64,000 nucleotides of DNA from Paragordius varius (taxonomy: Eukaryota > Animalia > Nematomorpha), in the NCBI GenBank assembly GCA_964247055.1, contig OZ176054.1:1488001-1552000 (forward strand). Direction: 5' to 3'. The translations under genes were made by a program, and so were the position numbers. Each line of letters begins with the position of its first letter. Position 1 is the first letter of the stretch. This document shows, piece by piece, positions 14,112 to 55,058 of this stretch. The notes beneath the pieces are model-generated. The model saw only the letters and a program-made list of their open reading frames with translations, was not told the DNA's origin and did no database searches.

Positions 14112-17100
14112 ATGGCGAGTAACTTAGTTCTCCATATATTTGCTTTGATATGTTTCACTAAATTAATAATGCCGGGATTGTCGGATTTCGTTGGTAAATA
14201 CAAAATTTGTCAAATTTTATTAAATCATAAATATAATATTTTTTTACTTTCTAGTTTATACCGACTTGGATACTGGAACCTCTGAATCGATTCAAACGAG
14301 TACATCAATTAATTAAATTTTTATATATTATGTTTTCTGATTATTTTATTACTGATATATATTTATAGCACTGGAATTGTATGAAAATCAAACAGGTAGT
14401 CATATGTAAAATACTTGAAATAATTTGTAACATTCCATTAGATTACCATTTTTTTTGAATTATATTAAAACAAAAAAGATTAAAAAATATTATCAAAATA
14501 AATTGCACATTATGTGAAATGAACTGCAGATTTGTTCCATTTTATAAGGATTTCGAAATAGGGATGTTAGGCCGAATATTAATCAAACCATATTTTAGGG
14601 AAAAATTAATTGAACGAACAATTATAAACATAGTGATAAATAAAAATCTTAGCTGGCAGTATAACTGTATAGACATACAGGTATATATACATATTAAAAC
14701 CCAAATATTAGAAACAGCAGCTGGGTATAAAAAAATGGGTGTGTAAACCAATCATTATAATCATGTTTTTAACACATTTATAAATATAATATTTTCATAA
14801 TCTGAATGATGATAAAATAATAATTAAATTATCAAAATAGATGAAAGTCTTAATATAACCCCGTTTCCCAAAAATAAAAATAGGGATTAGAAATTAAAAA
14901 ATATGACAACATATTTTCTAGTTTGTTAATTATAATTACCGTATAGATTGGGCTATTTAAAAAATTCATAAACAGCGGCAAAAAAAACAATAAGTTTAGA
15001 TACGGGATAATTTGATAAAATCTATCATTGGTTATAATTACATTATATATTAACGTTTTATATAATTTAATTATTAATATAATATATATACATATATTAG
15101 AATTAATGGAAAAAAGTAATGTTTTTTCTTAATTCTTTTCTTAGATTACTAAAATACGGACAAAACGTAAAAATATAAAAAAAATCTAACGGACAACCCT
15201 ATTTTTTTAAACCAAAATTTATCCATTAAAAATCATTTAATTAAAATGGTAAAATACATGATTAATTATGTTACCAATTTTCATATCTATTTTATTTGTC
15301 TTTTAGAAAAAATATTTGTCCTTATATTTTTACGTTTTGTCCGTATAATTTCCATTTTTTCATAATATAATTTTTTATAATACATAGTCGATCGATGGAA
15401 CACTTCTCTCAAAAGTTTATTATATTTTTATTAATTGCAAATTAAATATTTGCCGTAGTTATAAATTTAATAATAATATAATATGATTATAAATTAGTTA
15501 ACGAGGATTTCATTATGCCCCTTCGTTATAAGATTTATTCGCTCGAAAATCGAGGTAGTTTTTCTTTTCTTTTTTAAATTACTTTTAATCATTCAAAATT
15601 AAATATTTTTTATTAAATTTATTTTTCCTCAAAAAAAGATATACAATGGTTTCCGAATCAGGTAATATATTTACAGAATACGCCTGGAATAATTATTGTT
15701 TAAATTGACTTTCTAATTAATAATAAGTTTTTCTAACAATATATATAATATTCTATAGCAATATCAATTTTACATATAATTTTTTAGTCCATAATTCAAT
15801 CAAGTTTATTTTATTATATTTCCTTGTTTTTTAATAAATAATATATGATTGATTTATACGTTTTGATTATAATTATTTAGTTTACAATTATTCCGATGCC
15901 GTTTTGGATGATTTAAGTAATTATTGACAAATATTGAATACAATAAAAACTTAAATAAAATGAAACATCAAAAGACTATCCCATACTTTTTAAACCTTAA
16001 TTTATTCCTGTATTATAATTTGTTTTCAATCGTAAAATATATAATTAATTGTTTCACCAATTTAGTTATATTTAAAAAATGTTTAAAAATAGTAAAGCGT
16101 CTTTTAAAAAAATATTTATTTTTATGTATTTACTTGTTGTTTGGATAATTTCAATTTCTGATGTATAATTAGTTGAGGATTTGCGAAAACTAAAAATCGA
16201 ATCACATTGCCGAACATACACGTTTGAAAGTAAATATTAATACCATTTACAGCTTAAATTCACCCTCAAACAATTCAAATTTATTCTAAAATAAACTGTT
16301 CCAATATTTAAAATTAACTATATTTTTAAAATATTATATGAAAATTTCGTTTAAAATTAATATAATGAAAAAATAATAAACTATGCTATAAAGTAAAATA
16401 TTTTATATTAATAATGATATATTTCTAACCGAAAACACATAAATATTTTTATGGTGAATGTGAATTGTTCAAGGGTGAATTTATGATGATTTTAAGCATT
16501 AATTTTTATTAAATATTAACCCATGTCTCATTATAACTATATTTTATTTTTATTTTTAATTTTTATATGCATTTTTGGCGCATAACAATATTCTGACTTT
16601 AAATTAGCATTTTTAAATAAATTTTATTTCGATAAATAAATTTATTATTTTTAGAAAATCTAATCAGTGAGGGAATGATGAATGGCTTATTAAGTAGATG
16701 TTCATTTTCCTAAACAATACTTTTAAAATTAATTATTTTAATTTTTAAATGTAGTTAAAGAAATATGGAGCATGTACACTTTAGGTAAATATTGTGGAAA
16801 AAAATATTTTATTTTTAATTTTAATTGTACAGGAATCCCTGATATCAGCAACATAAAAAAAACTCATCTCAAAAATAAAACATGCTATTTTTTGGCTATC
16901 GGCGAATACACTGAAAAGGAAATTTCAAAAAATTTTAATTTAAGTATAATATATATATTATTACTTTTTAAAATGGAATAATTCAAATTCCAATATTTAT
17001 TTGTATTACCTTCTCCATATTTAGCATCCTATAAAGCTACCTTACAAATTAAGGATGGTAACTTATTTTGTTATACAGTAAAAAAAATAAAATTATACGG

Positions 17101-20100
17101 TCAAAACGAAAAAATTTAAGGACATTTTTTATAAAATCCACCATACTTTTCTAACTGTGATTATTCCCGCACAATGATTTAATTACCGTGGTCAATTATT
17201 TTTAACAATTTGAAAATCTATTATTTATTTCAGAAGATTAGTTATATTTAATAATAATATTCTGATAAAATTATTTGTCGTTAAAATTTAAGTTTCGTCT
17301 GCATAATTTCAATTTTTAATTAATATATAATTATTTTATCATTCATTTATTTCCACCAATAGATAAAGAATATTACTACGTGATTCGCAATTTCACATAT
17401 TTGGGTAAAATTAATTTTAACTTTTTTTTCAAACATTTTATTTCCAACATTTTTAAAAATGTATATATTATAGATTATCCACACCGAGCCAATATATGTC
17501 CTATTCAACAATCTCCATTGGATTACGCAACCTTTGGTATAATATTTTTATATCGATATTCGAAAATTTTTTATGATGATTATTTCAAATTGCCTTAACT
17601 ATCTTTTTAGTTAACAGGAATTCAATGTACAACATGCACCATCCTATAATTCATGCCAGGGGTAAACCTTATTCTAATTTTGTTAATATTAGTTATATAC
17701 CTGGGTTTCCCTTTTTTGTCCCATATAAGACTATATTCGCCTTTTAAAATTTTAATTCTATAAAAAATCAGCCAAGGTCAAAAAGTTGTTGATACATTAA
17801 ATTTGATAAAAAAAAAATTTTAAATTTTGAGATACTCCATTATTATAATCTTATATCAGTTTTTATCAATGTACCGTTTCCGCTAAAACATAATTAATTT
17901 TGTGTCAATTTTACCATAGCCTTATTTTCTTGTCGAAATATATGGTTTATAACGGTTTAAACCATTGTTAGATATCGGGCTTTGGGTTTTATGTATTCGG
18001 TGCGTTCATTTTGTTGAAAACTGCATAACAATAAGAAGATTGGACTTTCCAACACTTGAAATTTTCATAAATATCTATATAAAATATATGTATACATATA
18101 TATATATATATAGATTATAAACATTAATATATAATTGCCATAGATTATGATGCATTGATGGGACTTAGAGGTAATGCATATATCTTATTTCACTATTAAT
18201 TTTTTTTTAAATAAAATATTTATTTATCATGTCAATAGAACGATTGATTAGAGGTATAAAATTCAAAAATGAGAAATAATTATTTTTTCACTTGTCAATA
18301 TTTTAAAATAAATTATTATTATATAGGAAATAATTGGAAAAATTCTTCAAGAGGTAATTTAAAATTTATATAATATCGTTCCTTATTTAACGCAAAAACT
18401 AATACATATCTAATATTTTTAGCATTTCCAAACGAAAATTTTGAGATAACTCTCTTTTACAATCTGCATTACTTTCCACATCAAGGTACTTATTTTATTA
18501 TTTAAATTTCTTGATTATATATATATATATATTATTTATTTATTCCTTATTAGAAATGTTACCCAATTTTAAGGTAAAAGTTGTAATTTTAAATCAATTA
18601 AAATATATTTTATTAAAACAGTCAAGTTATGAAACACGTATGTATCTGACCCCTATTTTCATATATTTCATTTTTTATATATATACTTAAGGATTTCGGA
18701 TTTAATTAAAACCCATAGGGATCACAACCTTAATTTAAGATCATGTAATGCTCTAAAAATTTATTTACCCTTATAAGCTTTTTAATGATATGTATTTTAT
18801 ATTAAATCCAGAAAATGATATATTTTTTTAATATTCATATTTTTATTTGCAGTTGGTCAATTTTATAAAATGCATGATGCAGAAATAACAAATTCCCTTT
18901 TATAATCAAAAAATAATTTCGTTTTTTCATCGGGGAACATTCGAGATTATTGAATTGAAAATGATTTTTTTTGGTTGTGAGCTCAAACTATTTATGCCAA
19001 CTTAATTTAACCTGTTTTTTATAATTTAAAGTTTTACTATCACAAAAAATATCGTTTATATTAATAAAAAATATAGATATTTTCATTTTATTAAAACCAA
19101 CTATTGCTAAAATTTTATTATTATTGTATTTAGTTATCAATTATACGGAATCCGTTATGAAAAATCTAAGTAATTTGAAATAATTTTATTAATTAATTTT
19201 AAATTATATTATATTTACATATAGCTAAACATTCACATTCACCCTATTATCAAAGCTATTATTTTTCAAGTGATTTAATTTTTAAACATTTATATGCTAC
19301 TTTATATTTTAACCCAAAATTAACGCTTATTTTATTTTGCAGAACGTTTTCCATCCCAGGGAAAGTTGAATGGATCACAAAGTAATATTGAAACCAAATT
19401 TAACAAAATTTAAATTTTGGATTTATGGAGTTTTCATAAAACTATTTTTTTATATCCTTTTACTTATCATATAGTACAAGAAATATCGCAATTATATGGT
19501 AAAATATTGAAATTTATTCACTTATCTATCAACTATCAATGCTTTTCATTCGCTATTTAGATATGTTTGCTAATGAGCTGCAAGAATTTACAAAAACTCC
19601 AAACGCACAAAATTCAGAAAACAGAACATGTTATTATTTAACGTTTGGGCGGAGCATTGATGACCCCTTACCTAAATATTTTTCCAACCGTAGAGGTTAA
19701 TACTTACATTTTATTAGTCGCCTTAATTGAGTAAAATAAGTTTTACTAAAAAATATATTTATAAACGCATTTGTCGTATCTTATGAAAAAAACCAATTAA
19801 AATTTGGATATAATCTTTTCTCACAAAAAAATATTTATCAAAGTTAATAATTTTACCCGATTAATTTAACTATTAGATTCGTCATCATTTTTTGACTAAT
19901 AAAAGCTTAATTCTTATAATATTAAATAACTTTAATATCTGTAGATCTTGTCAATAAACTGTCGGAATTACGGACGGAATCTCTGAAAAAAGGTATAATA
20001 TGAGATTATTGTCCTTTCTTCCAAAATATAAATATATTATTAAATTTGTATAGATACCCCTTACGATTACATTGTTCGGAAAACGACATACCAAGGTAAC

Positions 20101-23100
20101 TCTATTTAAATCAACATATATCTATTATATAAATTTTATTCATTTGTTTTATGTAAATTCAACCGAAAAATATTTTATAATTTTCTAACACTATCAATTT
20201 TACAGAAGAAACACATATGCCAAAATTGTGCCCAATCTCATTGTCGCCCAATATCAATAATTCTAATAAAGGTATATATTTGTTTAAAATCAATATTTTA
20301 AAAATAATATGCAATAACCGCCTTGAACTTGAATTTCAAATTAAGATATTTATACCATACAATATATAATGTTTAAATCCGTAATATTTATTTAAAATAA
20401 ATTTTTACTTTTAAAAAGATATATGCTTGAATTAGAGGCGCCCCACAAATTGCTTAACTGTCGCATTTTTAGAAAATAAAAAAAGAATACGAAAACAATA
20501 CACACTATTATTTTCCATTTACTTGTTATTCCGTTCCCAAAAACAGTCGTAAATGAAAATATTAACCTTTAAGAACCAATTATTTTACTTTATATTCCAT
20601 CAATAAAATGAAAATAATTTAAAATTTGACTCTTTATCGAACAACTAATGTGGTCTTCTTAGAATCCAAACAATAGATATATTTTTCTGGCCTAATTACA
20701 AAATTTTGATTTTTCTCATTTAACGCATGGGACACCGCTTACAGTTTGCGCATAGAAAAATACGTTAGCCTGCTACCTTGTTATTGGGTTAACCTTAAAT
20801 TGGGCTTCATTACAAAATTATATATATATTTTTCAAATTGTCATCGAAATTTAAAATATTAATCATAATTAATTAATTGTTATATTTATGCTATGTTAGA
20901 TCATTTGAAAATACAATTAAAATCAAATATATTGCCGACAATGCGTCCGAATGCCAAAACACATGGTAAGTATTTGAAAGTTTGAATTTCCAAAATAAAA
21001 ATATATATGTTATAAAGAAATATTAAACACCTAACGGGAAATTATATCCCATCTATTAGAGTAAACCGCTAATATTAAATTTACTTACGTTATACGGCCA
21101 ATATTAGGCATTTAAGGCCCCCCGCCAGGTTTAATGCGGTTTATAGCCTAATGTCCGGCGCTTATTTTAAAAATCATTTTCGCAATTTATTCTTTAAAAA
21201 GAAGTCAATACAATGTATTAACATTACCATAAAAATATATATATTTTTGATTATTTGTTAAATCAAATATCCATAATTCCAAAAATACATAATAATACTG
21301 TCGTTCAAAAACGTATTGTTTGATATCCATGACGGATGGTCAATAAGCTAATAAAATAATTCACACCTCTGTAATATATTTTATAAATAAAACATATCAA
21401 ACACTAACTATAGAACCTCTTATCAAAGTAGTGTGACTTAAAAACTAAGAATTTGATGATATGAAAATATTTAATGTAATTGTCTATATATATAAAAATT
21501 TAAAAATTCATCGAAAAAGACGAAAATTTAAGTTTAACCCTGATTCATATCAAATTAAATATATATATATTTTAGATTCCAAGGAACTTAGGAATCTCAA
21601 AGGTAATCAAATAATTTTTTAAATATATATTTTTTTAAATATTTTTTTTAATTTAGAACGTCTAATCACAGGTAAAAAATATATTCAAATGGAATTCTTT
21701 TCTAATTTTTCGTATTATAATGTATCGTAATTTAATAATAAAAAACCGTAATAATCCCAATAATAATTTATTTGACACTATAAATGCTTTCTATATTAGG
21801 AAATAATTGGAAAAATCAATCAAAAGGTATTATATTATGTTAATTATTTAAAATTTTTTACAAAATATGAGGATTGTGTTTATAATATAAAATAAAATAG
21901 TTTTAATATTATATATATATAAATACTTTAAAGCTTCACCCAACGTAAATTATGTAATAACCCTGGCCTACAATATACATTACTTTGAAAACCAAGGTAT
22001 AAATACCTTTATTTTTTTCGTTTTGTCGCAATATTATACCCTAATATTTTTATTTACCTTTTCTAGAACTCTTGCCTGAATTTAACGTAAGATTAAATAA
22101 ATTTATTTAAAACAATTTTAAATTTATGTCCCTACAGTCTAGTTATGAAACACGTAAGTTTATTTAGATAATTAAAAATCTTTCAAAATATTCCGTTTTA
22201 TTATATTTGAAATATAATGATTCAGTTTGGATTACATGTAACATATAACAATGTGGTCAATTAATTTTGTAAAATAATGAAATGTTAAATAATTTTGCAA
22301 CTTAGTTTATCATCTTATATGCAAATCCCGGGGTCCTCCCAATTTTACAACTAATAGAGCTCATATTTAACTTCAGACTTTTAATTATCCAATATTTTTA
22401 ATAATTGAAACAAAAACATGAATTTAAATGATATGAGTTATAAAATTCTTAAGGCTGCTGGCATTATACCATAGCAACTTATTTAATATACTCTAATTGC
22501 ATATTAAAAGGATAGCTATGTGTTATCTTTATTGCTATTTTGAAACTTAAATATGTAACTGTTGAAATTGTTTTGCCTCACTAAATATTTTAAAAAATTT
22601 GTAGTTATTATATTAATCAAATTTTTTGCTCATTACAAATTAATTCCGCCCATCATTATTTAAAAAGAATAATGTTATATTTCGCTTCAAATTGGGGTTA
22701 CTAAATACCCCATAATAATTTAATTTGGTTTTTCAAAAAAAATTAATAAAACGGTCTCAATTTCAAATTAATATTTAAAAAAATTTGATTTTGATGAAAA
22801 AATATATATATCACTACTTCGACGCCATTTTTATTCAATTTTTAATATTTTAAAGGCTATTTATTTGAATAACATCTAAAATTTAAACAAAATGAAAAAG
22901 AAGTTTGTTTGCATTATATTTGATAAATTGCTAAATTTTCACTTTTGAGTTTTACCTTACAATATGTAATTTCAAGTATTTTGAATAAGATTTTGTTATA
23001 TTTCGGTTCATCATTGTTATATAAGTATAAATTTTTGTCATGGCTTCAATTCCTTCCATATTTTTTGAAGTATTCGATTTTAAACAAGCCTGGGGTATCC

Positions 23101-23355
23101 AATTACCCCAATTTTAATCAAAGGACGGAAATGACTGTGCTATATCCATGTTGTGTTTATAAAGTCGTATCATTTAAATAACATCTTTTTTTGTTATTAG
23201 CAAAGAATGTTTACGGTTAACCATATCCAAAATATTTTTAAATATTAAATAATGATATATTTCTTTTAACCGTTTTAGTTATCAACTATACGGATTCAAT
23301 TATGCCAAACATAAGTAATTATCAATTTATATAATAAATTATTATTTATTTAATA

Positions 23356-23393
<38 letters not shown>

Positions 23394-23752
23394 GATGAAT
23401 CAGTTTGGCTCTATTATCAAACCTATTATTTTGAAAGTAATTTTAGTTTTTTTTCAAAAAATTTAAATCGAATATAACACCATTTTTTTTATAGAACGCT
23501 TCCCTTCTCAAGGAAGACTCAATGGTTCTCAAAGTAAAAATTTTTTATTTTACCTTAAAATCAAAGGGTTTATTTTTCATCTTTTAAATAGCATTTTTAC
23601 AAAAACTCGAACCAACTTTTATTAGAAATATAACATGATTTACATAAGCGCCAAAAATACTAATTTTTATTAAAATTTACACTTATTTATGGGCGGAAAA
23701 CGCTAGAGATAATTATTTAGATTAAACCAATAGGTTCCCAAAACGTATAAAC

Positions 23753-23795
<43 letters not shown>

Positions 23796-26700
23796 ATTTG
23801 TACTTCAAGAGTCTCCTCAATACTTTAAATTCGCCCTCGAACAATTTAAATTCACCTGAAAATAAATTATGTTTTTTTAAGCAGCTAATAAAACTGATCA
23901 TTAGTAAAATAAATATTCTTATGCCATAATTTATTATTTTTCAGTACTATATTAATTTAAAACAAATTAAAAAATATAAAAAAATATAGGTAATTTTTAA
24001 TTTTTAAAAACACAAAATTAATTTTAGACTGAATTTAAATCGTTTAAAAACTAACTTGAATTGTTCAAGGGTAAATTTGGATTATTTAAGGGTGAAATTT
24101 GAATTGTTCAAGGGTAAATTTTAACTCTAAATGGTATATTCAAGATAGAGAGGGAGCGCTTTCTAAAAAATAAAATGAAAAGTACCGATTTTAGGTATGG
24201 TAAATTATATCCTGATAAAATTATCAGAAAAATATCATAATTTTCAGGGTCCCTAGCAAAATTTAAAGTCATCATGGGCCCCGAATACAATTTATGTCAT
24301 AACTCATTCGAGATTAGGAAAAAAGAGACTTTAAACACATAATAATAATATTTACTTGAGTAATTATTTTTTTATTGTTATTTAGTAAATGAAATCTCAT
24401 TACTATATGGTAATATAATATATTTCATAAATAATCATCTCATGTAAAAATATACCTAATGGTATGTAAATGGCAACAATATATAGATTATAATGCTGAC
24501 ATGCAAAAGGAAGATGATCTTCTGATCAAATACAACCCTCAAAGTACAGAAAACAAAACTTGTTATTATATGACGTTTGGGCGCAACATTAATAAATCAT
24601 TGCCTTACTATATTTCTAAACGTGATGGTTAGAATTTTACATTAACTTTTGTTTTTTTGGGATTAAAAATTAAATTTTTCAAAATTTAAAAGTTTTACAA
24701 ATTTTCCATTGAATCTCAAAAAATTGTATCCTACATCGTAATTAAAAACCGTTATTAATGTTTTATTTGGTAAAATTTCACATAATAATTATATTTTTTT
24801 GTGTAGATCTTCTTGCCAGATTACGAAACCTGCGCACTGAAACTCTTCAAAAAGGTACGCTCTTATTTTTGTTTCAAATATATAATATTTTAATTTATTG
24901 TCAATATTATAGATATGCCCTATGACTATATCGTTCGTCATACAACCTATCTCGGTAAGAATTATATTGTAAATAAAATTTTTTATTTAATTTTGGGCAT
25001 TTTAACAGATCAATCCTTTATTCCCAATCTATGCCCCATTCAAGTTATTGAAGAAACATTGCCATCCAATAAGACATCTAATAAAGGTATGTTCATTGAC
25101 TTTTCATTCATTTTTTAATACTTTAAATAGGTTTTAGAACTTAAATTTATATATTTAATATAGTAGTTTCAGCAGCAGCTCAAAATATAAACGTAACTGC
25201 AAATTCCACAAAAGGTCCATATAATTTGGATCAAATATCCGAACCACAAATCCTTAGTAAAACACTACTGGAATATATTTATTAAATATGTTTTAAAACT
25301 ACGCAGTTTATACTATTTAATAAATTAACTGATAAAAATATGATTGTGTTTTTAAAATAAACTACCAACATTCTTAAAAATTTTTGAACTTGAAACTTAG
25401 TGTATATTTAGTTTAGTTGATTTTCCGATCGATATTTAGATGGCTCAATCGAATCAACGATGGTAGCCTTGCCCTCAACTATATCACCAGAAAACAAAGC
25501 ACAAAGTAATATTATAGTATAAACAATTTTAAGAGTTAAAATTTTGAAATTAATACGGTTGGTGTTCTAATAAATATCATAAGTTCCCAATCCCTTTTTG
25601 ATAGTTATAACAGGGCAATTAAATATACGACGTTCAATAATTTAAATTTCATTTTGAATGAGGCCTAAAACTATGTTTATGTAGTTTATTTATAAAAAGT
25701 ATCAACATAACTTGATTTCCTGGGATTTTGACCTGTTAATACACGGTATGAATCTTATGCATAATGTCCTCTACGGTCTAGCCAATCAATTATAACACAA
25801 CGAAATCATATTTTATTAATAGGAAAAATTCCATTTTTCTATCAAATGTGTTTACTAATCTTCTTTTTTCAAAAATTATTCCCTTTTTTGAAAAATTATT
25901 CCTTAATTTATCCTTTTATTAGTTTAAGTTATGTTAAAATTTCTACGTTTATTCGTTTAGTGGTGATTGCAGGTAATTTGAATCAGATTTAATTATGTTG
26001 TCGTTTGGTATTATAATTGAATGTCACTCTACAAATAAATAATTTCTTTATTTTCCAGGGGCGGCGCTTACAGGCATAGCTGGTAAATATTGTTTTTTTG
26101 CTCTTTATTCCAAACAATTACATAACAGCAATTTTGCATTGCACTGTATTTAAGAGTATGGAATAGAGATGTACATTGGTATCCCACAATCATTTATTAC
26201 AGTATTCACCTTTTTATTAGCCAATTCAAATTATTTTTGGCCATTTGGCTATACATTAATGTATGGATTAAAATTAACATAGTTAAAATTAAACATTCTT
26301 TTCCAATCCTACAACATTTAATTTGTTTATATTATTAATATGTTATAATCATACGTTCCCGTATTCCTAATTGAACAGCAATAAATGTGCATATTATCTG
26401 TATATCGAAATTTTTACTGTAATATATGTATATGTATATGTATAGCTACGGGTGTAGCAATCGGGACAGCGACCGGAACAGCTGCAGCCTCAGCTGGAAC
26501 CGGTCTTGTGGTTGAAGGGGGAACTGCTTTGGCCGCTGGAGCTGAGACCGCTTTTGAATCTCTCACAGCTGGAAGTGAGACCTCTTTAGAATCTCTGACA
26601 GCTTCTTCAAGTTCTTCAAGTTCATCCTCGTCCTCTACGGCGGCGCTTACACAAGCCAACAGAGTCATCAGCAAGGGAACTACCAAAGTAGTAGTTTCAT

Positions 26701-29700
26701 CTTTAGCCGTGCCCCCGACTGCGTATGGGGCTTATCGAGCCTCCGCTCATTCCTCCCATTCTGAAGGCGGTCCATCTCATATCAGTAGTTCGGAAGTACA
26801 TACCCATATTCACACTGAAGCACACGAGGAACAACCTGAGGCCCCTATTACCATTAACAAGTTACAACCTAACCCAAATTCTATACGGATTGAACATGAA
26901 AGACTGCTTGGTGGAGGGACAGACGGTCCCAGTTCTCCGACCAGTGAAAGTCAATCATCGGATTCTTCGCAAACTCAGCATCAATCCAATGTTCCTTCCA
27001 AAAAACGACCAGCTGAGGACAGACCACAAGGACGTAAGTCATTTTGAAATAATATTTTGAAAATTTCATTAATATTTTTTATACCCTTTTAGCTAAACCG
27101 AAATCACAAAAATCAGGTAAAATTTTAAACTGGAAAATATAGCTGTGAAAAAAAATTTAAGAGTTATATTCAATTACTAAACATAAAATACCAATTATTT
27201 TATAGATTCCGAGTCTTTGGAATCCTTACTTACCCGAAAAAATTCCCGGACTCCAGTTAAAGCCCCTGTAAAACCTGTTAACCCTGCCTCTGTCCCCACC
27301 CAAATACATGAGCCTTCGACATCTTCCGTTGTCCAACCCTCTCATTCTAATGCTGCGTCTAAACAGTTTAAAAGACCTGTACAATCCACTCAAAATTCTA
27401 ATAAACCCAGACAACAGGAATCTAAACTTTTGCAACAACCAAATGTTTTAAAAGCCTCTAAACCAAGGCGGCCACCAACTTCAAATCGTGTCATTCCGGA
27501 AGCTGTGGAATCACCGAGCATCCCAGACGCGCCTGATACACCAACAACGTTTTCCTCGAATCCAGGTTTATTTTTTTAAAAATAAAATAGGATGGTGTAT
27601 TACAGGGGTCTCCAACATGAGACCCGATAAAAAAAAATATGGTCACCAAGATATTAAAATTTAAAAAAAAATTATAAAAGTTTCAAATGGCAAAGTACTT
27701 AAGTGTAATAAAGTAGTCATATTTTTTATCTTTTTACAGTTTGAAATCCAATAAACTATTTAATCATATTCATAACTTTCGAGGTGGCCTGCCAGATTGA
27801 TAGACACCCTTGCTGTATAAGATAAGGGGTGTCAATCCATATATATCCATATACAACTACTTTCGGCAAATTCCATAATATATATTTCCTTGAATGAAAC
27901 ATAGATGAAAACTTGCGCCCTGATGAAATTTTAGGAGAATCAAACCAGCCTGAAGGTATGCTATAATTCTAGTTAAATGACATATAGTTATTATACTACC
28001 CGAATTTTTAAAACCCAAACAGAATTTTTAATATTTAGTCATTAAAAATGATAAGCCTTTAGTGGGAACTGTCTTTTTTAAAAATCTACATTGTGAGAAG
28101 AGTGAAATAATATTTTAATGACAAAGCTGTTCCTTGTACAAATACTACTTAAATTTTCAAATTTCATTGAATATTTAGATTTAATAATTTGATAAAATTC
28201 CATTTTTGTCCTCTTTAATAAAAAATGATAAAATAAATTCACTAGTCGACTTTCAAATTATTCGCGGCGGATGAATTTAAAAACTTTGTATATTCAATTA
28301 AATTTATAATGATATGATGATTGTAAAAATGATTCATTGTTTTGAATTTAACATACCGACCCCAAATTAATCTCAACTGATTTCTTATATAAATATTTAT
28401 TTTATATTTCCATCATTTAATGTTAAATATGGCAATATATCGTTAAATGCAAAGAGTCACTATATTAACTATATTTATTTTTGCATATTTATAGAACACC
28501 AAAATGTTAAAGATTGTAAGAATACAAAAATTATTTTATTTAGAGTATCAATTATTTGTATATTTAGCATTACAAAATGTTAAATCCATTTTTTAGTCAA
28601 AAACATATTTTTTCAAGGACGCAATATTTTTTATCCATACGCAGCATTATTTCCAGCAAACTTATTTTTTCAGTCAAACGCAACTTTTCAAAAGGACTAC
28701 TGAAAATTGTGTTTGCTTGAAATAATGTTGCATTTGCTTGTAAAATGTTGCTTTTAGAAAAATGATATATATGTCATAAATGTGTAATAAAACTATTATC
28801 CTCATATTATCAATAATTTTTATAATGTAAACAAAATTTACAGTTTTTTTTAAAATCAATTATTTTCTGTTAATTGCTATAAATTTTTTTTGGTGCTTAT
28901 TACTAAATTTTGTGGCATTATATATATTTCATATATTATTTTTTATTTACATTCAAGGGCTAAGAAGTAATTATTTCTGCTAATATATTTATAATGAATA
29001 CAGTAGCGAGAGTTATTGGTGATTTCGGCTTTTAGAATTGGCTAAAAATGTAAAATATATAACATGTCAGTTGGCTTGTATAAGATTATAATTTTTAATA
29101 TTGACTTGATTGATAAATAAAATATTGCTTAAATGCTAAAAGACATGCAAGTTAAAAACCCTTTTACCCAATAAAAATTCTGAACTCATCAATAATGTCT
29201 CTCGTTACTGTTTACACAAGTTAATTTTTGATAGAAATTCAATTTTAAATAATTTTAAATTTAAATATAGTAAAATTTATTTCCATATTAATTAACCTTG
29301 TATAAATGTTTTACAATATCCATATATACAGAATCTTTCAATATAAATGGTGAGTCAGCGTTAAATATTTATATATATATATATATATTTATATTCAAAA
29401 TTAATATTTTTTGTTAAATATCTCCTTTTATTAATTAATTTTTATTTTCATTTACAAAACCAGTACCTAAGAATCAAATATTACCCACCGAAAACGGTAA
29501 TTTGATAAAAAATATTGTGGTCATATTATAGACATTAAAAATACGGAGAAAACGTAAAATAAAAAATATTATTTCAAAAGTAATTATATTTTTAAATTTT
29601 ATTTATTAATAAAACTCATTGTTTCAAAATGCAAAATATGAAATATAGATGTATATTGGTAATACAATAAATTAATATTGTACAATCGTAACTAAATTAT

Positions 29701-30692
29701 AAAAAATAATGGTTTAAAAAGTATGGTTGTCCTTTGAAAAAAGATATTAGTATTATATTTTTACGTTTTGTCCGTATTCAATTTTTATTGTATTTTTATG
29801 ACATCATTTGTTATAATGAAAATTCAGCTAAAAAATTTAAAATTGTTACACTTTTTTACAAAATGCATAGTTCAAGGTCAAGAGTCATCGATTCACAGCG
29901 AAAATGGTATTCCTTTAAAATTTTAAAATTTTTTAATATAGAATATTCTCATCTTTTTTTTGCTTATTTAGGAGGATCACCTTCAAGTATTTAATATGTA
30001 AAATGAAATAACAACAACAGTAACAATATACCAAATATCCATCATATGATCAATAATTTGATATTTTACTAATTTTAATTTTTAGATTTAGATAGCATTT
30101 ATAAAATATTATATTACTTCTCTGGTGTCGTTTTAATTAAAGTGCCTTTTGTTTTTAATTTAAAAAATTTATTTTTCGGAAACCGTTTTTAACAATGAAT
30201 AATGCATAAATTTCGTGTGAATTGTCGGTGCCGCATCAATCTAAATATTTATAAAATAAGTGCTTTAAATATGTGTTAAATCCTAAATGGCTAAACATAA
30301 CAGGAGCGAAGCACTGTGTTGACGATTAACAATCAATAAAATTTAATTATCTTCAATAAGTATTCGGTAAACACTTTATAATTTATTACACGTGTTTTTT
30401 TTAGCAATCGAATTGGAATCACAATCAAATTCCCATTCCACAAGTATAGTTGATTATTTATTATTTTTTTGTGATCGATAAATAGTTATTGTATTTAACT
30501 TATTTAATTGTGACCAACCCTCTTTATTCCTATATTATTGCAAAAAATTTAAATTTTACTTAATAATATCTTATACTGTTAATTTAGTGGTGATTTCATC
30601 AGAATCTGGTATATAATTTTCTTTGAATAATATTTTTTAAACATAAACGTACTGGTTTTTGCAATTAATTATATTGAACAGAAAATTAATAG

Positions 30693-30723
<31 letters not shown>

Positions 30724-33700
30724 TCATAAAAATATTTGACTTTTAGATTATAGGTTTTGTTTTAAAACAATTTTCATTTTTACTGTGTACAATTTTGTAT
30801 AAACAATAAAGGGATATTGTTTTAGATCGCTAATTTTGTGATTAAAGGAAGTAATTTTTTATCTAAACAACAATTATAAAACATTATATACCAATTACAA
30901 TTAAAATTGACCCTTGAACAATTCAATTTAACCCTCTAACGATTCAAATTAGCCCTTGTACAATTCAAATTCACTCTAAAAATAAATAATGTGTTTTCGG
31001 GCTAATATAACTCATTAACAAGAAATATATTCTTATAGCATAGTTTATTATTTTTTCCCTATTATATTAATTTATTTAGGGTGTATTTAAATTGTTCGAG
31101 GGTGAATTTGAATGGTTCAACGGTGAATTTGAACTGTGTAAGGGTGAATTTGAACTCTAAATAGTACATATTTATATGGATAAAAAATAACATTCTTTAC
31201 ATTTTTTACTATAATATAAAATACAGTTTTAAATTTTACTAGACCAATTAAATGCAAATTTTGTTCCCAAAACAATATATTTGTTTAGAATAATATGAAA
31301 TTTTTTATTTAGCCGTTAATTTGGAGATGAAAATATATCTTTATAAATTTCTTTTAGGGTCCAATACCCCAAAAAATTTAGGAATTTCGCAAATATAAAA
31401 TGATATAGCGCATCACATAAGAGCCTTTATTTAGGTCATAGTTGGTTTTTTATAAAATCCGCAATGTTTGAAAACACATTTTAGGGTTTAAATTTAAATC
31501 AGTATTCCAGCTCCAGTTTAAAGTCAAATTTATTGCCCTGAAAGTTTGTACACAAAGGTTTTTTTAGAAAAAAAGATGAAATGTTTTGCTATATGGCTTT
31601 TTAAAATTTTTGAAACCATTTTAATTATATGTAACGTAACTACTGGTTTTTTATTCCTTAATCCGTTCAATGTTAAACATACCATAATATTTCTAACAAA
31701 TTTTGGCTTTTTTTGCAATGTTTGATATGTTATTTAGATGGCAATCCCACTTCAATCCAAAGTTCTGAAACCATTCCACAAATTCATTCGCAAGATAGTG
31801 AGAATATTATTTCTAATTTTTTAAACAATTAAAAACTAGACATATATATATAATGTGCAATGTAGGGTCAATACATTTATAATTTGCGTATATTTGCATA
31901 GAAAAATTTACCAGTTTTCACCGAAAAAAATTAGCAGCTAAATTATGAATTAAACTTAGTAATAGAAAAAATTAATTGAATTGACCTAACCTTAGGAGCA
32001 AGAATATCTAAAACACAAAAATCATTAGTGTTATTTAATTTATTTAGAGCCCAATATTGAATGATATATATTCTAAAATTAATGAAAAAAACTTGATTTT
32101 TTAAGCGCTTCAAATTTAAATTTTTTGTAATCATAATTTTCTTGCTATATATTAAACTAGTAGGTATCCTATTTAGTATCATGAATTTATCATCTATTAA
32201 TATAACCATAATTAAAAAATTCGAAAAATTTAGCTGAAATCGCGGCATCCCCAGTTCAAGGTTAGTATTTTACATCTATATTAGCTATTTATACAATTGA
32301 TCTAAATGGTTACTGGCGAGATACTATTAAAACTATAACAATTATAAAATAATTAGCGTATTTTTTTACAATTATTTACTTTAAAATGAAAAATTTGTTT
32401 AAAAATATTAATGTCAAAATAAAAAATTTATATTTATAGGAATTTTCTATGGATAAATTATTTTTTTTGGACTATATAGGTAAAAATAATATATTTTGAC
32501 ATTATATAGAGATTAGATTATTAATAGCTTACGTTTAGAAGTGACAGTACTTTTTAAACTAATAGCTGGCCTTATGAAACAAAATTTTTACATAAAGTTA
32601 GGTGTAGGCTATTTTAAGAATATGATTACAGATAAAAGCTTCTGTTAAAAAAAATAATAAATTATATTTGGTCATACAGCAAATATCCAACCTTCGCTAG
32701 ATGTCTCAGATCCCCTCCAAAATATCCAGTCTATAGAAAGTTGTATTTTCATATTTAATCTTGATTAGCTCTGAGAATATCTGATACCGATTCCCCAAGT
32801 CGTGATATTTTTTATATATACCATTTACAATTCAATTTTACCCTTGAACAATTCAAATTCACCCTTGAACAATTCAAATTCACTCTCGAACAATTCAAAT
32901 TCACCCTCAAATAAAATATATGTTTTTGATTAAATATTACCAATATTTTTATATATTTAAAAAAAAAAATTAAAATTTTGTTTTAAATTAAAATAATACT
33001 GTTAAATAATAAACTATAACTTAAACATACATTTCATATTAATAATGAGTTATATTAGTTCGAAAATACATAATTTATTTTTAGAATTTGAATTGTTCAA
33101 GGGTGAATTTGAATTGTTGGGTGATTTTGAACTGTAAATGGTATATTCAAACATATTTTATTAAAAAAAATATAATCTTTTCTCCTATTAGTTCCCTCCA
33201 ACCCATCTATTCAGTCACAACAAAGTAGAACTTAAACTACTTTTTCTCTTTTAAAGATAAATTAACGATGAATATAATTTTAGCCTTAATCCGAGAATCC
33301 CCAACCCATGGTAAACAAATACAAAATTATAATTTATTTTATAATAAATTATGAAAATCAATCAAATATTTATGATAAATGCGTCCTTTAATATAGCATA
33401 ACAAAATTTAATTTTAGCGATAGGTCCAAATTTTGTCTAAATATTTATATTGATAATATTTTATTGCAAAATATTTATCTTGATGGAATAGAATTAAGCA
33501 TTCACGCTAATTTTAATAAAGACTATTTTTATGTTAAACATATATAGTAAAAATAGAAATTTTACGGACCTAACGAAAAATATGGCGATAAATATTTTTT
33601 TCTAACTGACAACCCTACCTTGTAAACTTAATTTTCATACACAAACTTTTTGTCAATTTTACCTAATAAAATAAGGTCTGTTAATAAATTACATCATTTC

Positions 33701-36700
33701 TTATTTCGCTACCCAGAACAATAAACATTTGACAAGATTGCTTTGAAGAAATTTTATAAAATATTTGTCTTTAAATTTTTACGTTTTTTCCGCTTTTAAT
33801 TTGATTGATATCAAAAGAGTTGCAAAAAAGTTGTAAGGACATTAGTCATATATTGAAATCAATACTTGCCAAGATCCAAAAACTTATGTTATCTTAGGAT
33901 TAAAGTTTTATAGCGGCACAAAGGGGCATAATTATTATTTTAAAAGATACTCTCAATAACCATATAAAATTGCATTATCATAGAGTATATAGCTAAAATT
34001 TGTCAATAACAGTTGTTTTATTCACGATTAAAACAAGTGTGACCAATTTAATTTTTCCATCAATTCAACAACAAGATTAATGTGTTTGGTAAAAGTATAG
34101 CATAGTATTAATCACACAAAATTTTAGCAAAAAAATATTGTGTAATTTGAGAGTCGCATATACCCTTATTTACCCAAAATAGTAAAGCGTAAACTATATT
34201 ATTAATCTCAAATTTATATATGAATTTATTTTTAAATTATTATGCAGGTTCAGATATACCAAACATACATTCGATGGAAAGTTTACATTTTCATTTTTAA
34301 CCTTTTTTAGCTGTTTTGAATTCGGATATCGATTCACCACGTAAAAATTTATATTTCAATTTAAAATTAAATATAAATTTATATTCATCCTGTCAGATGC
34401 CTCGAACAACCCATCTATTCAAGCCCAACAAAGTAAAAATAAAATATTTTATTTTGTATTTCAAATTTGTTAACAATAAAATTTTTTATTTTAGCCGAGA
34501 TCATAGTATCACCTTCTCATGGTTAGTATTTGAGTTTAGAAAATATTATCATATCTATTATATTATCATAAGAAGTTATTAGTTGTTAAAAAATACGTAT
34601 TCGAAACTTTTATCTTTTAACATCTGTTACGGACACTGTTAACAGTATATTATATACCATTTATAATTCGAATTCACCTTAAACAATTCAAATTCCCCAA
34701 AATATATTATGTTTTTAATGATTAAAACCATTTTTTTTATATTTTTAATAAATGATTGTTTAAAATTAAAATAATACTGAAAAACTAATAAATTAATCCA
34801 TAAAGATATATTTGATATTTAAATATGAATTTATTTTCATCTTGTCAGATGCCTCAAACATCCCATCTATTCAATCCCAACAAAGTAAAAATAAAATATT
34901 TTATCTCTTCGAATTTATTAACAATAAATTTAATTTTAGCCGAGATAGTATCACCTTCTCATGGTTAGTATTTAAGTTTAGAAAATATAATCATTTATAT
35001 TATATTAACATATTTTAAGTTAAAAATATGTACATATCAAAATTTACCAACGTAATGCGTTTCTAAACATTCATCTTTTAACATCTGTTACGGACACTGT
35101 TTAACATTATATTATATACCATCACCTTAAACAATTCGAATTCACCTTAAATTCGAATTCACTTTAAACTATTCCAATTCACTTTAAACAATTCAAATTC
35201 ACCTTAAATTAGAATTCCCCCTAAAATAAATTATATGTTTTTAATGATTAAAACCATTTTTTATATTAATAAAGAAAATTTTAAAATTAAAATAATATTA
35301 ATAAATTAATCCATAAAGATATATTTGATATTAAAAATAAATTATATTAGTTCAAAAACAGATAAATTAATTTTACATTAGATAACAAATTTTCTGAACA
35401 TCGAAAGTTTGCATTTCTATCATTTTTAGAGTAAATCTGAAATAAAAATTATAATATTACCTAAGAATTTTGTGTAAAATTTGATTTTTTTGTTATACGC
35501 CTTCTTTATCAAAATTTAATAAAAAATGTTTTTCTTTGCAAATATACAACAAATGTCTATTTATAATATATTATTCGAAAGAGTAAAAGTCTTATAAAAA
35601 GCATATTAATATGTTTTACATCGATAGTTACTATTGGACATAGGAAGCGCGCGCGAAGCGGCGTTTCCTTAATTAATATATTTTTAAAACTAATGGATGA
35701 AAATAGCTCAAACTATGTCTAGATGGCAATAATGTCTAGTTAAGATAACAAAAGAAATTTTTTTAATTAAAACTCATTTATTTCTTTAATGTCATTCAAA
35801 ACAGCCATTTTTAAGTTTAAAAATACCATCTCATGAATAATTAATTTCCTTAAAAGAGCTTATTATTATAAATTTCAAAGATTATAAATACAGGTTAGGA
35901 TATTCTTGATCCTTTATACACATTATTATACTATTCGAATTATGTATTTTAGTAACCACTAAGATAAATAATTTTGATAATTAAAAAGCAAACCAAATTT
36001 TTCAATTTTTTTTATATTTAATAATAATTCCAATAATTATAGATATGATTGTTAGTCTGTAAAAATTTTATTTAAGGGTTGAAAATTTCGACTATATAAA
36101 CCCAAATAACTTTTATATCAGATTGTTGTATGAATAACTATCATTCGAAAGAGCAGTTTTTCGCGCTCTTTCGAATGATATATAATTATATGGCATTATA
36201 TCTAAAACTAATTATAAAAATTTTAAGTCTAAGGTTAAATGCCAAATATTTTCGATAAACTCAAAAAAAAAATTCTTAAGAGTTGCGAATTTTGTTTTCA
36301 CTTATACTATTTATATATTAAAATGATATATGTATTTATAAGGATAACAGTTAAAAAAAAGTCAAAATTTGTTGTTTATCGATATAAATTGTTCAAGGGT
36401 TCGTTCGAGGGTTAATTTCAGTTGTAAATAATTAATATTCAGTATCTAAAACAACGAAAAATTTGTATACTCAATGATAATATTGGAATATAAATAAGTT
36501 AACTCAAATATTTCTCCAATAAATTTTAACTTACTTTTTTACCCAAATGCGCTTTTGTGGATTTCAATGAATTTGAGTTTAATAAAAATACTATTTTTTC
36601 AAAACCAAACTATAGAAATTAAATTTAACATAATATATAATACTTAATATTCCATATACAATTATAGATAATGGACCTAGCACGAGTAAGATTTTTATAG

Positions 36701-37944
36701 CTTAAAAACAAATTTTAAATATTTCAATTAAGGTCGACAAAATCAACACGTTTCACACCGCATTCAAACGGAAAATTCAGGTAATGTATCCTTGCATAAG
36801 ATATTAATATTTTTCTTAACATAAAAATTAACATCTATTTGTTAACTTGTTAGAGCCTCAACCAAGCACAAGTAAACAAAAAAACATTAGATCCATTTCT
36901 GTTAAACATTTATTATCATAACTTAAATATAATAACTTAACTATTTTAGGCCAAAATCCCGAAGATCATGAAGGACATAGAGAGACGGAACAAACATGTT
37001 TCTTTTGTTCAATTCATAATTCAATTTATAATTCATTTTTCAAATATAATTTATTTAAGAATAATAATTTAATCTTGATTTATTTAGCTCAAACAAACGT
37101 GGATGAACACGGTTTGACTTATTTTATTTTATTAATCTATCAAAATGTTATAACAATATCACATCTTTTTATCTTCCTTAATCTCCATTTTGATAATAAA
37201 ATAATAAATTGGGCGTAAATTTTGTTAACCCTCATTAATTTGTTAAGAAAAATGGGCTGGAAATAGGCTTATCATTATTGTCATTAAAATTTTTTATTTA
37301 AAATCGAAAATGGCTGATAATAATTAAACGTAAAAAACTGGGATTCAATATAATTAAAATAATTTTTAACAAATGCAAATTTGCTCAGAGCGTATTTTAG
37401 GCTGTTTTAATATGTAATACCCAAATTGATTGAATTTTATTTGATCGGTTATAAATGTAAAGTCTGTCTGTGTGTGACAGGCGTATTATTACATTTTGTT
37501 TTAAACAATATTCCGATAATATAATTATCGTTTTTTTGCGACCTAATAATTAGAGTTAATGCTGGAAGCTTTCCAAGAGTTTGATCAAATGAGGACTAAC
37601 TGTAAGTGTAAAAATCACTACTAAACTACATTAACCTTGAAGAGCGAAAAATTTACTATATTATTATGCGCATTTATTAGTATTCAATAGAATTGCAGTC
37701 AAAATTGAAGGATGCATTAATGGTAAACAATTAATCCTTATAAAATCATAATTATCAAATATTTGTAAAAATTATAATTTAATCATTTAGAATTGGAAGA
37801 TTGGATGAGAAGTATTTATAAATATATACATATATACATATATATAATGCAAAAATATACCTACATTAAAGGTAAATTAAAGGTTTACTTCGTGTACGTT
37901 TTACTAACTTTTTTTCAGATGGTATCAATGATGGGCTTTTATAA
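14112..37944 (+). CDS. Micro-exon gene (~82 exons, ~1377 aa): signal peptide, three tandem ~210-240 aa repeats, Gly/Ala hydrophobic segment, low-complexity tail; probable single-pass membrane or secreted protein
   Basis: Manual AG/GT model, open from ATG (MASNLVLHIFALICFTKLIMPGLSDFV) to TAA, 4134 nt, no junction stops. Exons: 14112-14193,14255-14299,14369-14395,15101-15115,15388-15414,15498-15554,15639-15661,15788-15803,15881-15916,16173-16229,16655-16693,16755-16784,16833-16943,17025-17057,17363-17404,17474-17536,17611-17661,18144-18170,18239-18253,18327-18353,18423-18485,18554-18573,18622-18637,19134-19169,19225-19269,19343-19381,19475-19498,19561-19695,19945-19992,20054-20095,20206-20271,20900-20965,21576-21602,21657-21671,21800-21826,21934-21996,22067-22086,22138-22153,23279-23314,23392-23436,23495-23533,24386-24409,24487-24627,24807-24854,24913-24954,25009-25086,25164-25256,25440-25505,25961-25972,26059-26082,26446-27033,27093-27116,27206-27565,27905-27955,28495-28515,28958-28966,29332-29349,29464-29496,29972-29986,30405-30443,30588-30608,31738-31797,32234-32260,32680-32739,32769-32798,33192-33224,33284-33310,34248-34280,34311-34340,34397-34432,34495-34521,34849-34884,34940-34963,36668-36685,36733-36780,36854-36871,36950-36997,37088-37111,37554-37601,37681-37722,37791-37811,37919-37944. 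Exons in the three repeats corroborate each other in length, phase and peptide. Exons after 28000 are individually less certain. TACTAAC-like branch point before the last exon; AATAAA at ~37983. Confidence 0.82.
15154..15346. mobile_element. MITE family 2 (~200-240 bp; TIR ATACGGACAAAACGTAAAAATATA)
   Basis: 24-bp inverted repeat. Further copies at 29541-29777 and, degenerate, ~33560-33805. Confidence 0.75.
23758..23793. repeat. (TA)n microsatellite
   Basis: Directly visible. Others: (TA)n ~1023-1045, ~23365-23390, ~45790-45819; (CA)n ~13826-13843; (TC)n ~30696-30723. Confidence 0.95.
27603..27812. mobile_element. Small hAT-type MITE in an intron
   Basis: CAGGGGTCTCCAA left end and rc CAAGGGTGTCTA right end. 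Flanks gtgtatta/ctgtataa match 6/8. Confidence 0.5.
31738..34963 (+). repeat. Six tandem two-exon Ser/Pro/Gln-rich modules within the micro-exon gene
   Basis: Each pair is a 33-60 nt exon ending ..IHSQD/IQSIE/IQSQQ/IHSME/IQAQQ/IQSQQ plus a 24-30 nt exon TEIAASPVQ/TLRISDTDSP/TLIRESPTH/TVLNSDIDSP/TEIIVSPSH/TEIVSPSH. The last two pairs also share intron sequence. Confidence 0.75.
32821..33141. mobile_element. MITE family 1 (CCATTT..AAATGG ends, TA-flanked, 21-bp subterminal tandem repeats), representative copy
   Basis: Inverted ends with a repeated cttgaacaattcaaattcacc unit. Other copies: ~16243-16483, 23794-24134, 30891-31164, 34657- and ~35119- (half copies), 39483-39715, ~40435-40655, 60679-60948. 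TA flanks suggest the Tc1/mariner superfamily. Confidence 0.85.
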
Positions 37945-42097: not shown

Positions 42098-42616
42098 ATG
42101 ACTTCAAATATTTCAAAATTAATACAAGATATGACGCTTGCCAGGTCTGAATATGGTAAAATGGCTTATAAAAATAACCTGCTAAAGAAACTATATATCC
42201 TCTATCATGGCATTTATCAATTAAGATCAAAACTTGGTGAAATCCAAATAATATTACATAATACAACGATATACATCATAAAAACCATTCAGTATTTTTC
42301 GGACCCAAAATTTAAGCAAAGATTATGCCACGTTTTAAAAATTAATTCAAATACACGCTACAAAATACACGAGGATCTTAAAAACGTATTTTATTTACCG
42401 AAATCTCAGGGGAATTCGGTTCAAAACCAGACATTAGGAACCCAAAATTTTAAATCAATGCCTCTTTCAAACATTTCATTCAATGATCATTATGATTCAA
42501 TTTGTAACATAGTACTGTCACAAAGTGAATTTATCCAACATTTAGAATCAGAAGGCGAAAGATTACGGAATGAAATAAATAGGTTACAGGAACTACTTTT
42601 AGCCGACAATATATAA
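42098..42616 (+). CDS. Uncharacterised 172-aa ORF with C-terminal coiled coil (possibly one exon of a larger gene)
   Basis: Long stop-free frame in very AT-rich DNA, starting immediately after an AG acceptor. C-terminal QSEFIQHLESEGERLRNEINRLQELL is heptad-like and loosely recalls SDCCAG8 (QSQYIHHLEAEV) from memory; not verified. Confidence 0.5.
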   Translation: MTSNISKLIQDMTLARSEYGKMAYKNNLLKKLYILYHGIYQLRSKLGEIQIILHNTTIYIIKTIQYFSDPKFKQRLCHVLKINSNTRYKIHEDLKNVFYLPKSQGNSVQNQTLGTQNFKSMPLSNISFNDHYDSICNIVLSQSEFIQHLESEGERLRNEINRLQELLLADNI

Positions 42617-54299: not shown

Positions 54300-55058
54300 C
54301 TGATTTAAGGTTTGCAGACGATACCACTCTTATAGCTGAAAGTGTAAATGATTTAGAATTGATCGAAGAGATTCGAAAAGAAATATTGAGTTATGGTCTT
54401 ATGCTTTAACCCTAACAAAACCAAAATATTATGTACTGGAGAAAAGCCTACAATTATTATAGAGGGAGTGGAAATAGAAATAGTTCAACAGTTAACGTTT
54501 TTCGGCGCAGTAATTTCAGAGGATGGGTCTTCAACTCCTGACATCAGAAAGAGAATAGGATTGGGTAAAGAAGCGATGACCAAACTAATAAAGATTTGGA
54601 AAAACAAAAGCGTAGGAGTTAAAACCAAAAAAGGATTACTCTACTGTTTCGTTCTCCCTGTCACCACATATGGATGTGAGAGCTGGACTCTCAGAAAAAG
54701 AGACAAAGAAAGGCTCATGGCTTTCAAAAGGAGCTGCTGGCGTAGGATGCTAGGATACACCTGGAAGGATAAAATTAAGAATGGAAATCTAACTACAGAA
54801 ATAAAGCCTAAAACAAACATCCTGGTAATAATTCTAAAAAGAAAGTTAACATATTTTGGTCATGTCATGCAATCGAATTCTCTAGAGAAAGATACAATGT
54901 TTGGGAAGGTAGAAGGACAAAGGAAACGAGGCTGACCACTGATGAGGTGGTTGGATATGATAAAAGAGGAGACTTAAATGACATTACGATCTCACTAGCG
55001 GTAAAAGATAGAAGAAAGTGGAAAGAAATATTTACTACTTAGAAATAACCAACCAACC
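54300..55058 (+). mobile_element. 5'-truncated non-LTR retrotransposon, RTE (BovB-like) clade, RT C-terminal part
   Basis: LRFADDTTLIAES, LNPNKTK (frameshift), YGCESWTL, YFGHVM, LEKDTMFGKVEGQRKRG..RWLDMI. Short (AACC)n tail at ~55047-55058. Confidence 0.88.

Follow-up and report, generated by a model that had tools for sequence, protein, structure and literature searches.

We analysed a 64,000-nt window of the genome of the hairworm Paragordius varius (assembly GCA_964247055.1, contig OZ176054.1, positions 1,488,001 to 1,552,000, forward strand; all coordinates below count from the first letter of the window) and found on its + strand a predicted chain of very short exons that runs for ~24 kb, from an ATG at 14112 to a TAA stop at 37942-37944. 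We read this chain as one real gene, apparently lineage-restricted, whose ~76-82 exons would encode a type I membrane glycoprotein of ~1,330 aa, and we give this reading, which was reached from genomic sequence, a probability of roughly 0.6. It is carried by the open chain itself, by a symmetry of the exons that exceeds chance, by purifying selection on the frame of the predicted ectodomain, and by a one-sided distribution of glycosylation sequons. An earlier model of the same locus (the sequence-only reading) had 82 exons and ~1377 aa, and had been interpreted as a counterpart of the schistosome micro-exon genes (MEGs).

A 24-kb chain of symmetric phase-1 micro-exons

The whole window is strongly AT-rich, its GC content being 0.20-0.37 per 2-kb bin. 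The sequence-only reading had remarked that the region looks non-coding in the track of open reading frames (ORFs), and our listing agrees: between 14 and 38 kb it is nearly empty, apart from one ORF of 220 aa and one of 120 aa at 26.4-27.6 kb. We describe the locus with our own dynamic-programming gene finder, which allowed GT-AG introns of at least 20 nt, carried split codons over the junctions and had no preference for any intron phase. Chains were scored by codon log-odds against the local trinucleotide background, with re-estimated splice matrices. Starting from the ATG at 14112, the finder returned between 66 exons under a strict per-intron penalty and 81-84 under a loose one, nearly all of them in phase 1, and in most runs the chain reached the stop at 37944, so that both ends of the gene coincide with those proposed previously. 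The model was then curated by means of three internal repeats: homologous exons that the finder had missed were added, and frame-compensating oddities within repeat-derived intron sequence were removed.

After curation the model comprises 76 exons that total 3,996 nt and encode 1,331 aa. Its exons have a median length of 36 nt; 42 of the 76 are no longer than 36 nt and 68 no longer than 66 nt, while two large ones, of 588 and 360 nt, account for 24% of the coding sequence. The exons stand out in base composition, with a GC content of 0.39 compared to 0.21 in the introns. Phase 1 is shared by 72 of the 75 introns (96%), and 68 of the 74 internal exons are divisible by 3. The few exceptions are themselves regular: if the exons of the repeated 14-exon cassette are lettered a to n, the three introns outside phase 1 are the homologous junction of e and f, one per cassette, and the six asymmetric exons are a pair of 20 or 23 nt and 16 nt, again one pair in each of the three cassettes. 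The long micro-exon chain of the sequence-only reading thus held up and its exact exon count did not; its size classes (46 of 82 exons at 36 nt or less, 74 at 66 nt or less) shift to the curated values above, and its 74 symmetric exons among 80 internal ones become 68 of 74, with six exceptions in both models. The ~6 additional exons of the earlier model are probably weak symmetric candidates such as 21117-21128, 23201-23215 and 28495-28515, which our analysis neither supported nor excluded.

The phase-1 symmetric pattern exceeds chance. When models were trained solely on the exons upstream of 27566 and then run on from the 360-nt exon, the real DNA scored 212 and all 26 internal exons were symmetric, whereas controls of equal length (the reverse strand, three other stretches and 10 dinucleotide shuffles) scored 80-124 and gave 2-12 symmetric exons among 12-26, about one third as expected. 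As a positive control, the MYG1 gene at 57737-62002 (+) was recovered without special settings as seven exons of 79-240 nt with intron phases 2,2,2,0,0,2, none of them phase 1, and two of these exons match Pfam MYG1_exonuc (E 2.8e-19 and 1.5e-20). Because MYG1 came out with ordinary exons and phases, micro-exons and phase 1 belong to the gene described here and not to the method or to every gene of the genome. Two of the MYG1 introns are ultra-short, with 25 nt at 57883-57907 and 24 nt at 58004-58027. Splice-site matrices were tried as a sole test and set aside, as they discriminate weakly in AT-rich DNA.

Downstream of the large exons the chain continues as 24 micro-exons, which we refer to as the tail chain. 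A codon model built from the two large exons preferred the annotated frame in 23 of these 24, and all 24 are open in that frame compared to 15-16 in the other two frames; this test is supportive but not independent, because the exons had been chosen with a related model. The tail exons are sharply set off from their surroundings, with a GC content of 0.415 against 0.144 in the 30-nt flanks.

Ectodomain repeats and predicted topology

The region upstream of the large exons contains three tandem two-cysteine domains of ~200 aa (R1, R2 and R3). R2 and R3 are each encoded by the 14-exon cassette, and their exon lengths agree position by position except at the 11th (135 and 141 nt) and the last (66 and 78 nt); R1 has no clear counterparts of cassette exons 1-3. 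In a tblastx self-comparison the repeats were visible at exons only. R2 and R3 share 59% amino acid identity over 200 aa, and R1 shares 32-33% with each of them; the cysteine pair is spaced 60 residues apart in every repeat. At the DNA level, identity between R2 and R3 ranges over 0.59-0.94 in the exons, while their homologous introns resemble each other no more than shuffled sequence does. Since the cassettes match exon for exon, the fragmentation is older than the triplication. Moreover, the comparison of R2 with R3 gave pN 0.25, pS 0.65 and dN/dS 0.20, which indicates that the predicted frame is under purifying selection. Because the ectodomain micro-exons encode pieces of a conserved domain held by such selection, skipping one of them would probably break the domain. 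These results bear out the statement of the sequence-only reading that the gene is larger than MEGs and has repeated folded domains.

A 19-residue Kyte-Doolittle scan of the predicted protein found only two hydrophobic segments above 1.3: residues 1-30 (peak 2.04), which on this hydropathy form a putative signal peptide, and residues 719-742 (peak 1.86). N-x-S/T sequons are distributed very unequally around the second segment, with 22 before it against 9.7 expected and none after it against 8.3 expected, both values lying outside all 2,000 shuffles. In place of sequons the part behind the segment, a tail of ~580 aa, has several N-P-S/T motifs; it is rich in Ser (19%), Pro (10%) and Gln (8%), has almost no aromatic residues and lacks cysteine. 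An N-terminal and a single internal hydrophobic segment, with sequons only on the N-terminal side of the latter, are what a type I membrane glycoprotein would display, and we infer such a protein with a long, probably disordered cytoplasmic tail. From the N-terminus, its layout would comprise a signal peptide, three glycosylated two-cysteine domains of ~200 aa, a short stalk, a Gly/Ala-rich transmembrane segment and the Ser/Pro/Gln-rich tail.

The tail chain has its own repeats. Six copies of a two-exon cassette lie at 31738-34963, with an N-P-S-I-Q-S-Q-Q-like motif in the first exon and S-P-S-H at the end of the second. The cassette exons differ in length by multiples of 3 throughout, while the introns between them are 436, 26, 59, 30, 62 and 55 nt long. 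Between the two members of the youngest pair (34397-34521 and 34849-34963) there is one indel of 3 nt in an exon and one of 7 nt in the intron. The pair lies in a recent tandem duplication of a ~450-nt unit within 34350-35010, which comprises two micro-exons plus their introns with 81-92% identity in both, and which is a candidate for copy-number variation between individuals. The gene may thus have been assembled in two steps: an ancestral domain that was already divided into 14 tiny exons would have been triplicated exon for exon, and the tail would then have lengthened as two-exon units, introns included, were duplicated in tandem, a process that would give an open frame only with symmetric exons.

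Intron phase and intron content

The introns of the curated model are 26-1,704 nt long, with a median of 84 nt; the shortest are 32743-32768 (26 nt) and 34281-34310 (30 nt). Because most introns are short and the long ones look like transposon insertions, splicing would proceed by intron definition and would be mostly constitutive. Phase 1 usually accounts for a share of ~0.3 of animal introns. Within one cassette it accounts for 13 of 14 introns (13 within the ~200-aa module plus the boundary intron), for which the probability at that share is ~2e-6. The uniform phase of the gene is mostly accounted for by duplication, which covers the tail and the three cassettes but not the uniformity within a single cassette.

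Several sources of this uniformity were considered and rejected. An internal repeat within the domain was sought by hhalign self-comparison, which came up blank (the best alternative alignment had P 0.23). A common inserted element as the origin of the introns does not fit, since the short introns share AT-rich low complexity only and repeat families are shared by the long ones alone; likewise, no intron at the locus is made from a copy of exon ends. Codon composition cannot be the full cause: G is commonest at codon position 1, yet among AG sites within the large exons only 51% fall in phase 1. It accounts for about half of the phase-1 bias and is a part of the explanation at most, so that a further pressure for symmetry is needed; selection for frame-neutral skipping or mis-splicing is a possible source of the remainder. 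With nearly all introns in one phase, exons could be skipped at no cost to the frame, and the tail could in principle vary in length.

Two kinds of repeats were seen in the introns. One family occurs in five long introns (14396-15497, 15917-16172, 17058-17362, 29497-29870 and 33311-34247) with 69-83% identity over 56-172 nt, and its distribution suggests that long introns are short ones enlarged by insertions. The other is a short-unit repeat (~21-nt units, translated NLNCSRVNL or FEFTLEQFK) present in several introns of the gene and near 60.5 kb; its word depth in DNA runs is ~10,000-fold that of single-copy flanks (3.9-5.9 million vs ~400). Outside the gene, the longest ORFs of the window include those at 42098-42616 (+, 172 aa), 50227-50622 (-, 131 aa) and 54393-54935 (+, 180 aa), none of which had a Pfam match at E ≤0.01; by eye, the second and third resemble fragments of mobile-element proteins.

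Table 1. Curated exon map of the predicted gene, with the short-unit repeat of its introns.
Feature	Position in window	Strand	Length (nt)	Basis or remark
Exon 1, ATG and hydrophobic N-terminus	14112-14193	+	82	sets phase 1; GT donor at 14194; Kyte-Doolittle peak 2.04
Two symmetric phase-1 exons between putative signal peptide and R1	14255-14299, 14369-14395	+	45, 27	finder
R1, 11 exons homologous to d-n of R2/R3	15498-17536	+		tblastx self-matches on exons alone; same exon order
R1 exons 1-6	15498-15554, 15639-15661, 15788-15803, 15881-15916, 16173-16229, 16655-16693	+	57, 23, 16, 36, 57, 39	
R1 exons 7-11	16755-16784, 16833-16943, 17025-17057, 17363-17404, 17474-17536	+	30, 111, 33, 42, 63	
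Linker exon	17611-17661	+	51	phase 1; finder
R2, 14 exons	18144-20271	+		59% aa identity to R3
R2 exons 1-7	18144-18170, 18239-18253, 18327-18353, 18423-18485, 18554-18573, 18622-18637, 19134-19169	+	27, 15, 27, 63, 20, 16, 36	
R2 exons 8-14	19225-19269, 19343-19381, 19475-19498, 19561-19695, 19945-19992, 20054-20095, 20206-20271	+	45, 39, 24, 135, 48, 42, 66	
Linker exon	20900-20965	+	66	phase 1; finder
R3, 14 exons	21576-25086	+		exon-for-exon counterpart of R2
R3 exons 1-7	21576-21602, 21657-21671, 21800-21826, 21934-21996, 22067-22086, 22138-22153, 23279-23314	+	27, 15, 27, 63, 20, 16, 36	
R3 exons 8-14	23392-23436, 23495-23533, 24386-24409, 24487-24627, 24807-24854, 24913-24954, 25009-25086	+	45, 39, 24, 141, 48, 42, 78	
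Two stalk exons	25164-25256, 25440-25505	+	93, 66	further N-x-S/T sequons
Two micro-exons, first part of Gly/Ala-rich hydrophobic segment	25961-25972, 26059-26082	+	12, 24	hydropathy 1.86, residues 721-739
Large exon, rest of predicted membrane segment and start of Ser/Ala/Thr-rich tail	26446-27033	+	588	in 220-aa ORF; phase 1 at both ends; GC of 2-kb bin 0.37
Symmetric exon	27093-27116	+	24	two substitutions between individuals (27095, 27111)
Large exon, Pro/Ser/Gln-rich tail	27206-27565	+	360	120-aa ORF; phase 1 at both ends
Tail chain, 24 symmetric phase-1 micro-exons	27905-37811	+	15-63	finder, codon model
Tail exons 1-8	27905-27955, 29464-29496, 29871-29906, 29972-29986, 30405-30443, 30588-30608, 31738-31797, 32234-32260	+		
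Tail exons 9-16	32680-32742, 32769-32801, 33192-33224, 33284-33310, 34248-34280, 34311-34340, 34397-34432, 34495-34521	+		
Tail exons 17-24	34849-34884, 34940-34963, 36668-36685, 36733-36780, 36854-36871, 36950-36997, 37088-37111, 37791-37811	+		
Terminal exon with TAA	37919-37944	+		best chain end in finder; AATAAA ~40 nt downstream
Short-unit repeat	16230-16500, 23790-24140, 30880-31170, 32810-33140, 34650-34700, 35110-35220, 60470-60750			

Competing readings and comparison with known genes

The four best sequencing runs matching the two large exons proved to be genomic DNA over 27000-32999, with even depth and contigs that were colinear across introns (for example, 27431-28021). Among the variants listed, 2 of 40 substitutions and 0 of 12 indels were exonic in the curated model, whose exons cover 13% of the stretch; the sample is too small and too selective to carry weight. 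Nine substitutions clustered in 42 intron nt (27833-27874) separate the haplotypes or individuals of runs X2, X3 and X5, and the adjoining exon 27905-27955 had no variant among those listed. In homologue searches, the large-exon ORFs and the longest repeat exon had no match in a word-indexed protein collection, eight single exons had none in Pfam at E ≤10, and one exon run against Atlas gave nothing usable. The sole borderline match, P0001 (E 5.5e-4), came from a three-copy profile of the longest exon searched against 1.84 billion representatives; it was rejected as a chance match because only a short motif around the first cysteine was matched. P0001 consists of many repeats of a short motif, which we take to be of the FNIP type.

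Several of our observations weigh against a single gene for a type I membrane glycoprotein. The predicted membrane segment is rich in Gly, Ala and Thr and has no flanking basic residues, and the total absence of sequons from the tail exceeds what a neutral cytoplasmic sequence would lead one to expect. Because every exon is in phase 1, continuity of the frame cannot prove that the tail and the upstream exons belong to one transcript. Several tail splice sites score poorly by matrices trained on the ectodomain, and splice sites taken alone give a modest enrichment: 10 of 20 candidate pairs were symmetric and open in phase 1, compared to 7 of 29 in controls. Five small runs tentatively labelled RNA, with the same species label, lacked the sampled words of the large exons. 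Finally, the single-exon queries found no homologue, a result of low power that is no proof of a novel domain.

A rival reading is that the locus holds two units, a glycoprotein gene ending shortly after 27565 and, at 27905-37944, a separate gene or a decaying remnant. When the donor of the 360-nt exon is left unused, the frame stops at 27579, and an AATAAA follows this read-through stop; the intron beyond it (27956-29463) spans 1.5 kb, some tail splice sites score low, and the uniform phase makes the joining of the two parts uninformative. We consider such a division unlikely, as the tail chain has neither a start exon nor a signal peptide of its own, its 24 exons all remain open and symmetric, it carries on the composition of the two large exons (Ser, Pro and Gln, with no sequon), and its codon preference fits theirs in 23 of 24 cases. 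That the chain, or at least the tail, is an artefact of searching for GT-AG pairs in AT-rich DNA, or an unexpressed pseudogene, seems to us very improbable. A finder run at low penalty does build 14-28 pseudo-exons in control DNA too, and both the RNA-labelled runs and the homologue searches came up empty; against this, control chains are about two thirds asymmetric and score ~100 nats lower, and neither explanation sits well with a dN/dS of 0.20 between repeats, 1,331 open codons and sharp GC steps at the exon borders.

The interpretation offered by the sequence-only reading was functional: a MEG-like variation system in which combinatorial skipping would diversify a host-interaction protein, secreted or at the surface, into very many isoforms. 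Part of that description stands, namely a hydrophobic N-terminus, which may be a signal peptide, and symmetric phase-1 micro-exons. Almost any exon skip would also stay open, given 72 phase-1 introns among 75 and a terminal T in no more than 2 of 75 exons, and the share of the phase bias that codon composition covers is only about half. The functional part finds no support in our analysis of the predicted product. Purifying selection acts on the conserved domain that the ectodomain exons encode, the low-complexity part has no sequon and lies behind the membrane segment, and a membrane-anchored product of this size from 76 exons falls outside the MEG definition; a variation system of this kind is accordingly something we regard as rather improbable. 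A gene for a type I membrane glycoprotein, mostly constitutively spliced, is the reading we prefer.

The comparison with MEGs themselves points the same way. MEGs are specific to the Schistosomatidae, have 10-20 exons of 6-81 bp and secreted products of up to 189 aa, and their isoforms have been verified in transcripts and proteins (10.1101/2023.06.21.545858). The P. varius gene resembles them in its putative signal peptide, in its AT-rich introns and in a run of short exons, most of them divisible by 3 (68 of 76 at 66 nt or less, 68 of 74 internal ones symmetric); both kinds of gene are found in parasitic worms and are difficult for automatic annotation. MEGs, however, have no membrane segment and no folded repeats, whereas this gene has three conserved 200-aa domains and a membrane segment at 719-742, with 76 exons and 1,331 aa in place of 10-20 exons and a small secreted product without an anchor; and while MEG isoforms are verified, this gene is known from genomic sequence alone. 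Its size, its predicted membrane anchor and its folded repeats place it outside the schistosome MEGs, and it would work at most partly like one. Even its most MEG-like part, the low-complexity tail, would be cytoplasmic and not exposed to a host.

Genes of uniform phase appear to be closer analogues in design. In tropoelastin, the PEVK region of titin and collagen arrays, short exons have their borders in one phase, and cassettes can be duplicated or skipped in frame. The predicted gene shares with these a single phase at its exon borders (72 of 75 introns), and the tail cassettes at 31738-34963 are comparable to their repetitive flexible segments grown by tandem exon duplication. The analogues differ in being matrix or muscle proteins with larger exons, whose symmetric arrays are confined to repeats, whereas in the predicted gene a folded domain that is not repetitive is divided into 14 pieces in this phase as well. 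A similar difference separates the gene from class 1-1 exon modules. Like these, it would encode an extracellular multidomain protein with duplicated modules bounded by phase-1 introns. In class 1-1 exon shuffling, phase 1 classically marks module borders, whereas 13 of 14 introns of a cassette are in phase 1 here and no internal repeat was detected that could explain this uniformity.

A bolder proposal, to which we give little credence, is that hairworms evolved giant micro-exon genes independently. Selection would then keep introns in phase 1, even within a folded domain, for in-frame skipping or duplication, so that a heavily glycosylated surface protein could diversify through combinatorial isoforms or evolve rapidly in length, and the gene would be a convergent counterpart of MEGs on a ten-fold larger scale.

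If it is transcribed as modelled, the gene would be among the most finely fragmented protein-coding genes known to us and would offer a clean case for why intron phase turns uniform. Standard gene finders would then miss a class of surface proteins in a little-studied phylum, and the gene would help to test, outside flatworms, whether micro-exon genes accompany parasitism. Even if it is spliced constitutively, it would still hold a lesson for annotation and provide an example of how a protein can grow by cassette duplication.

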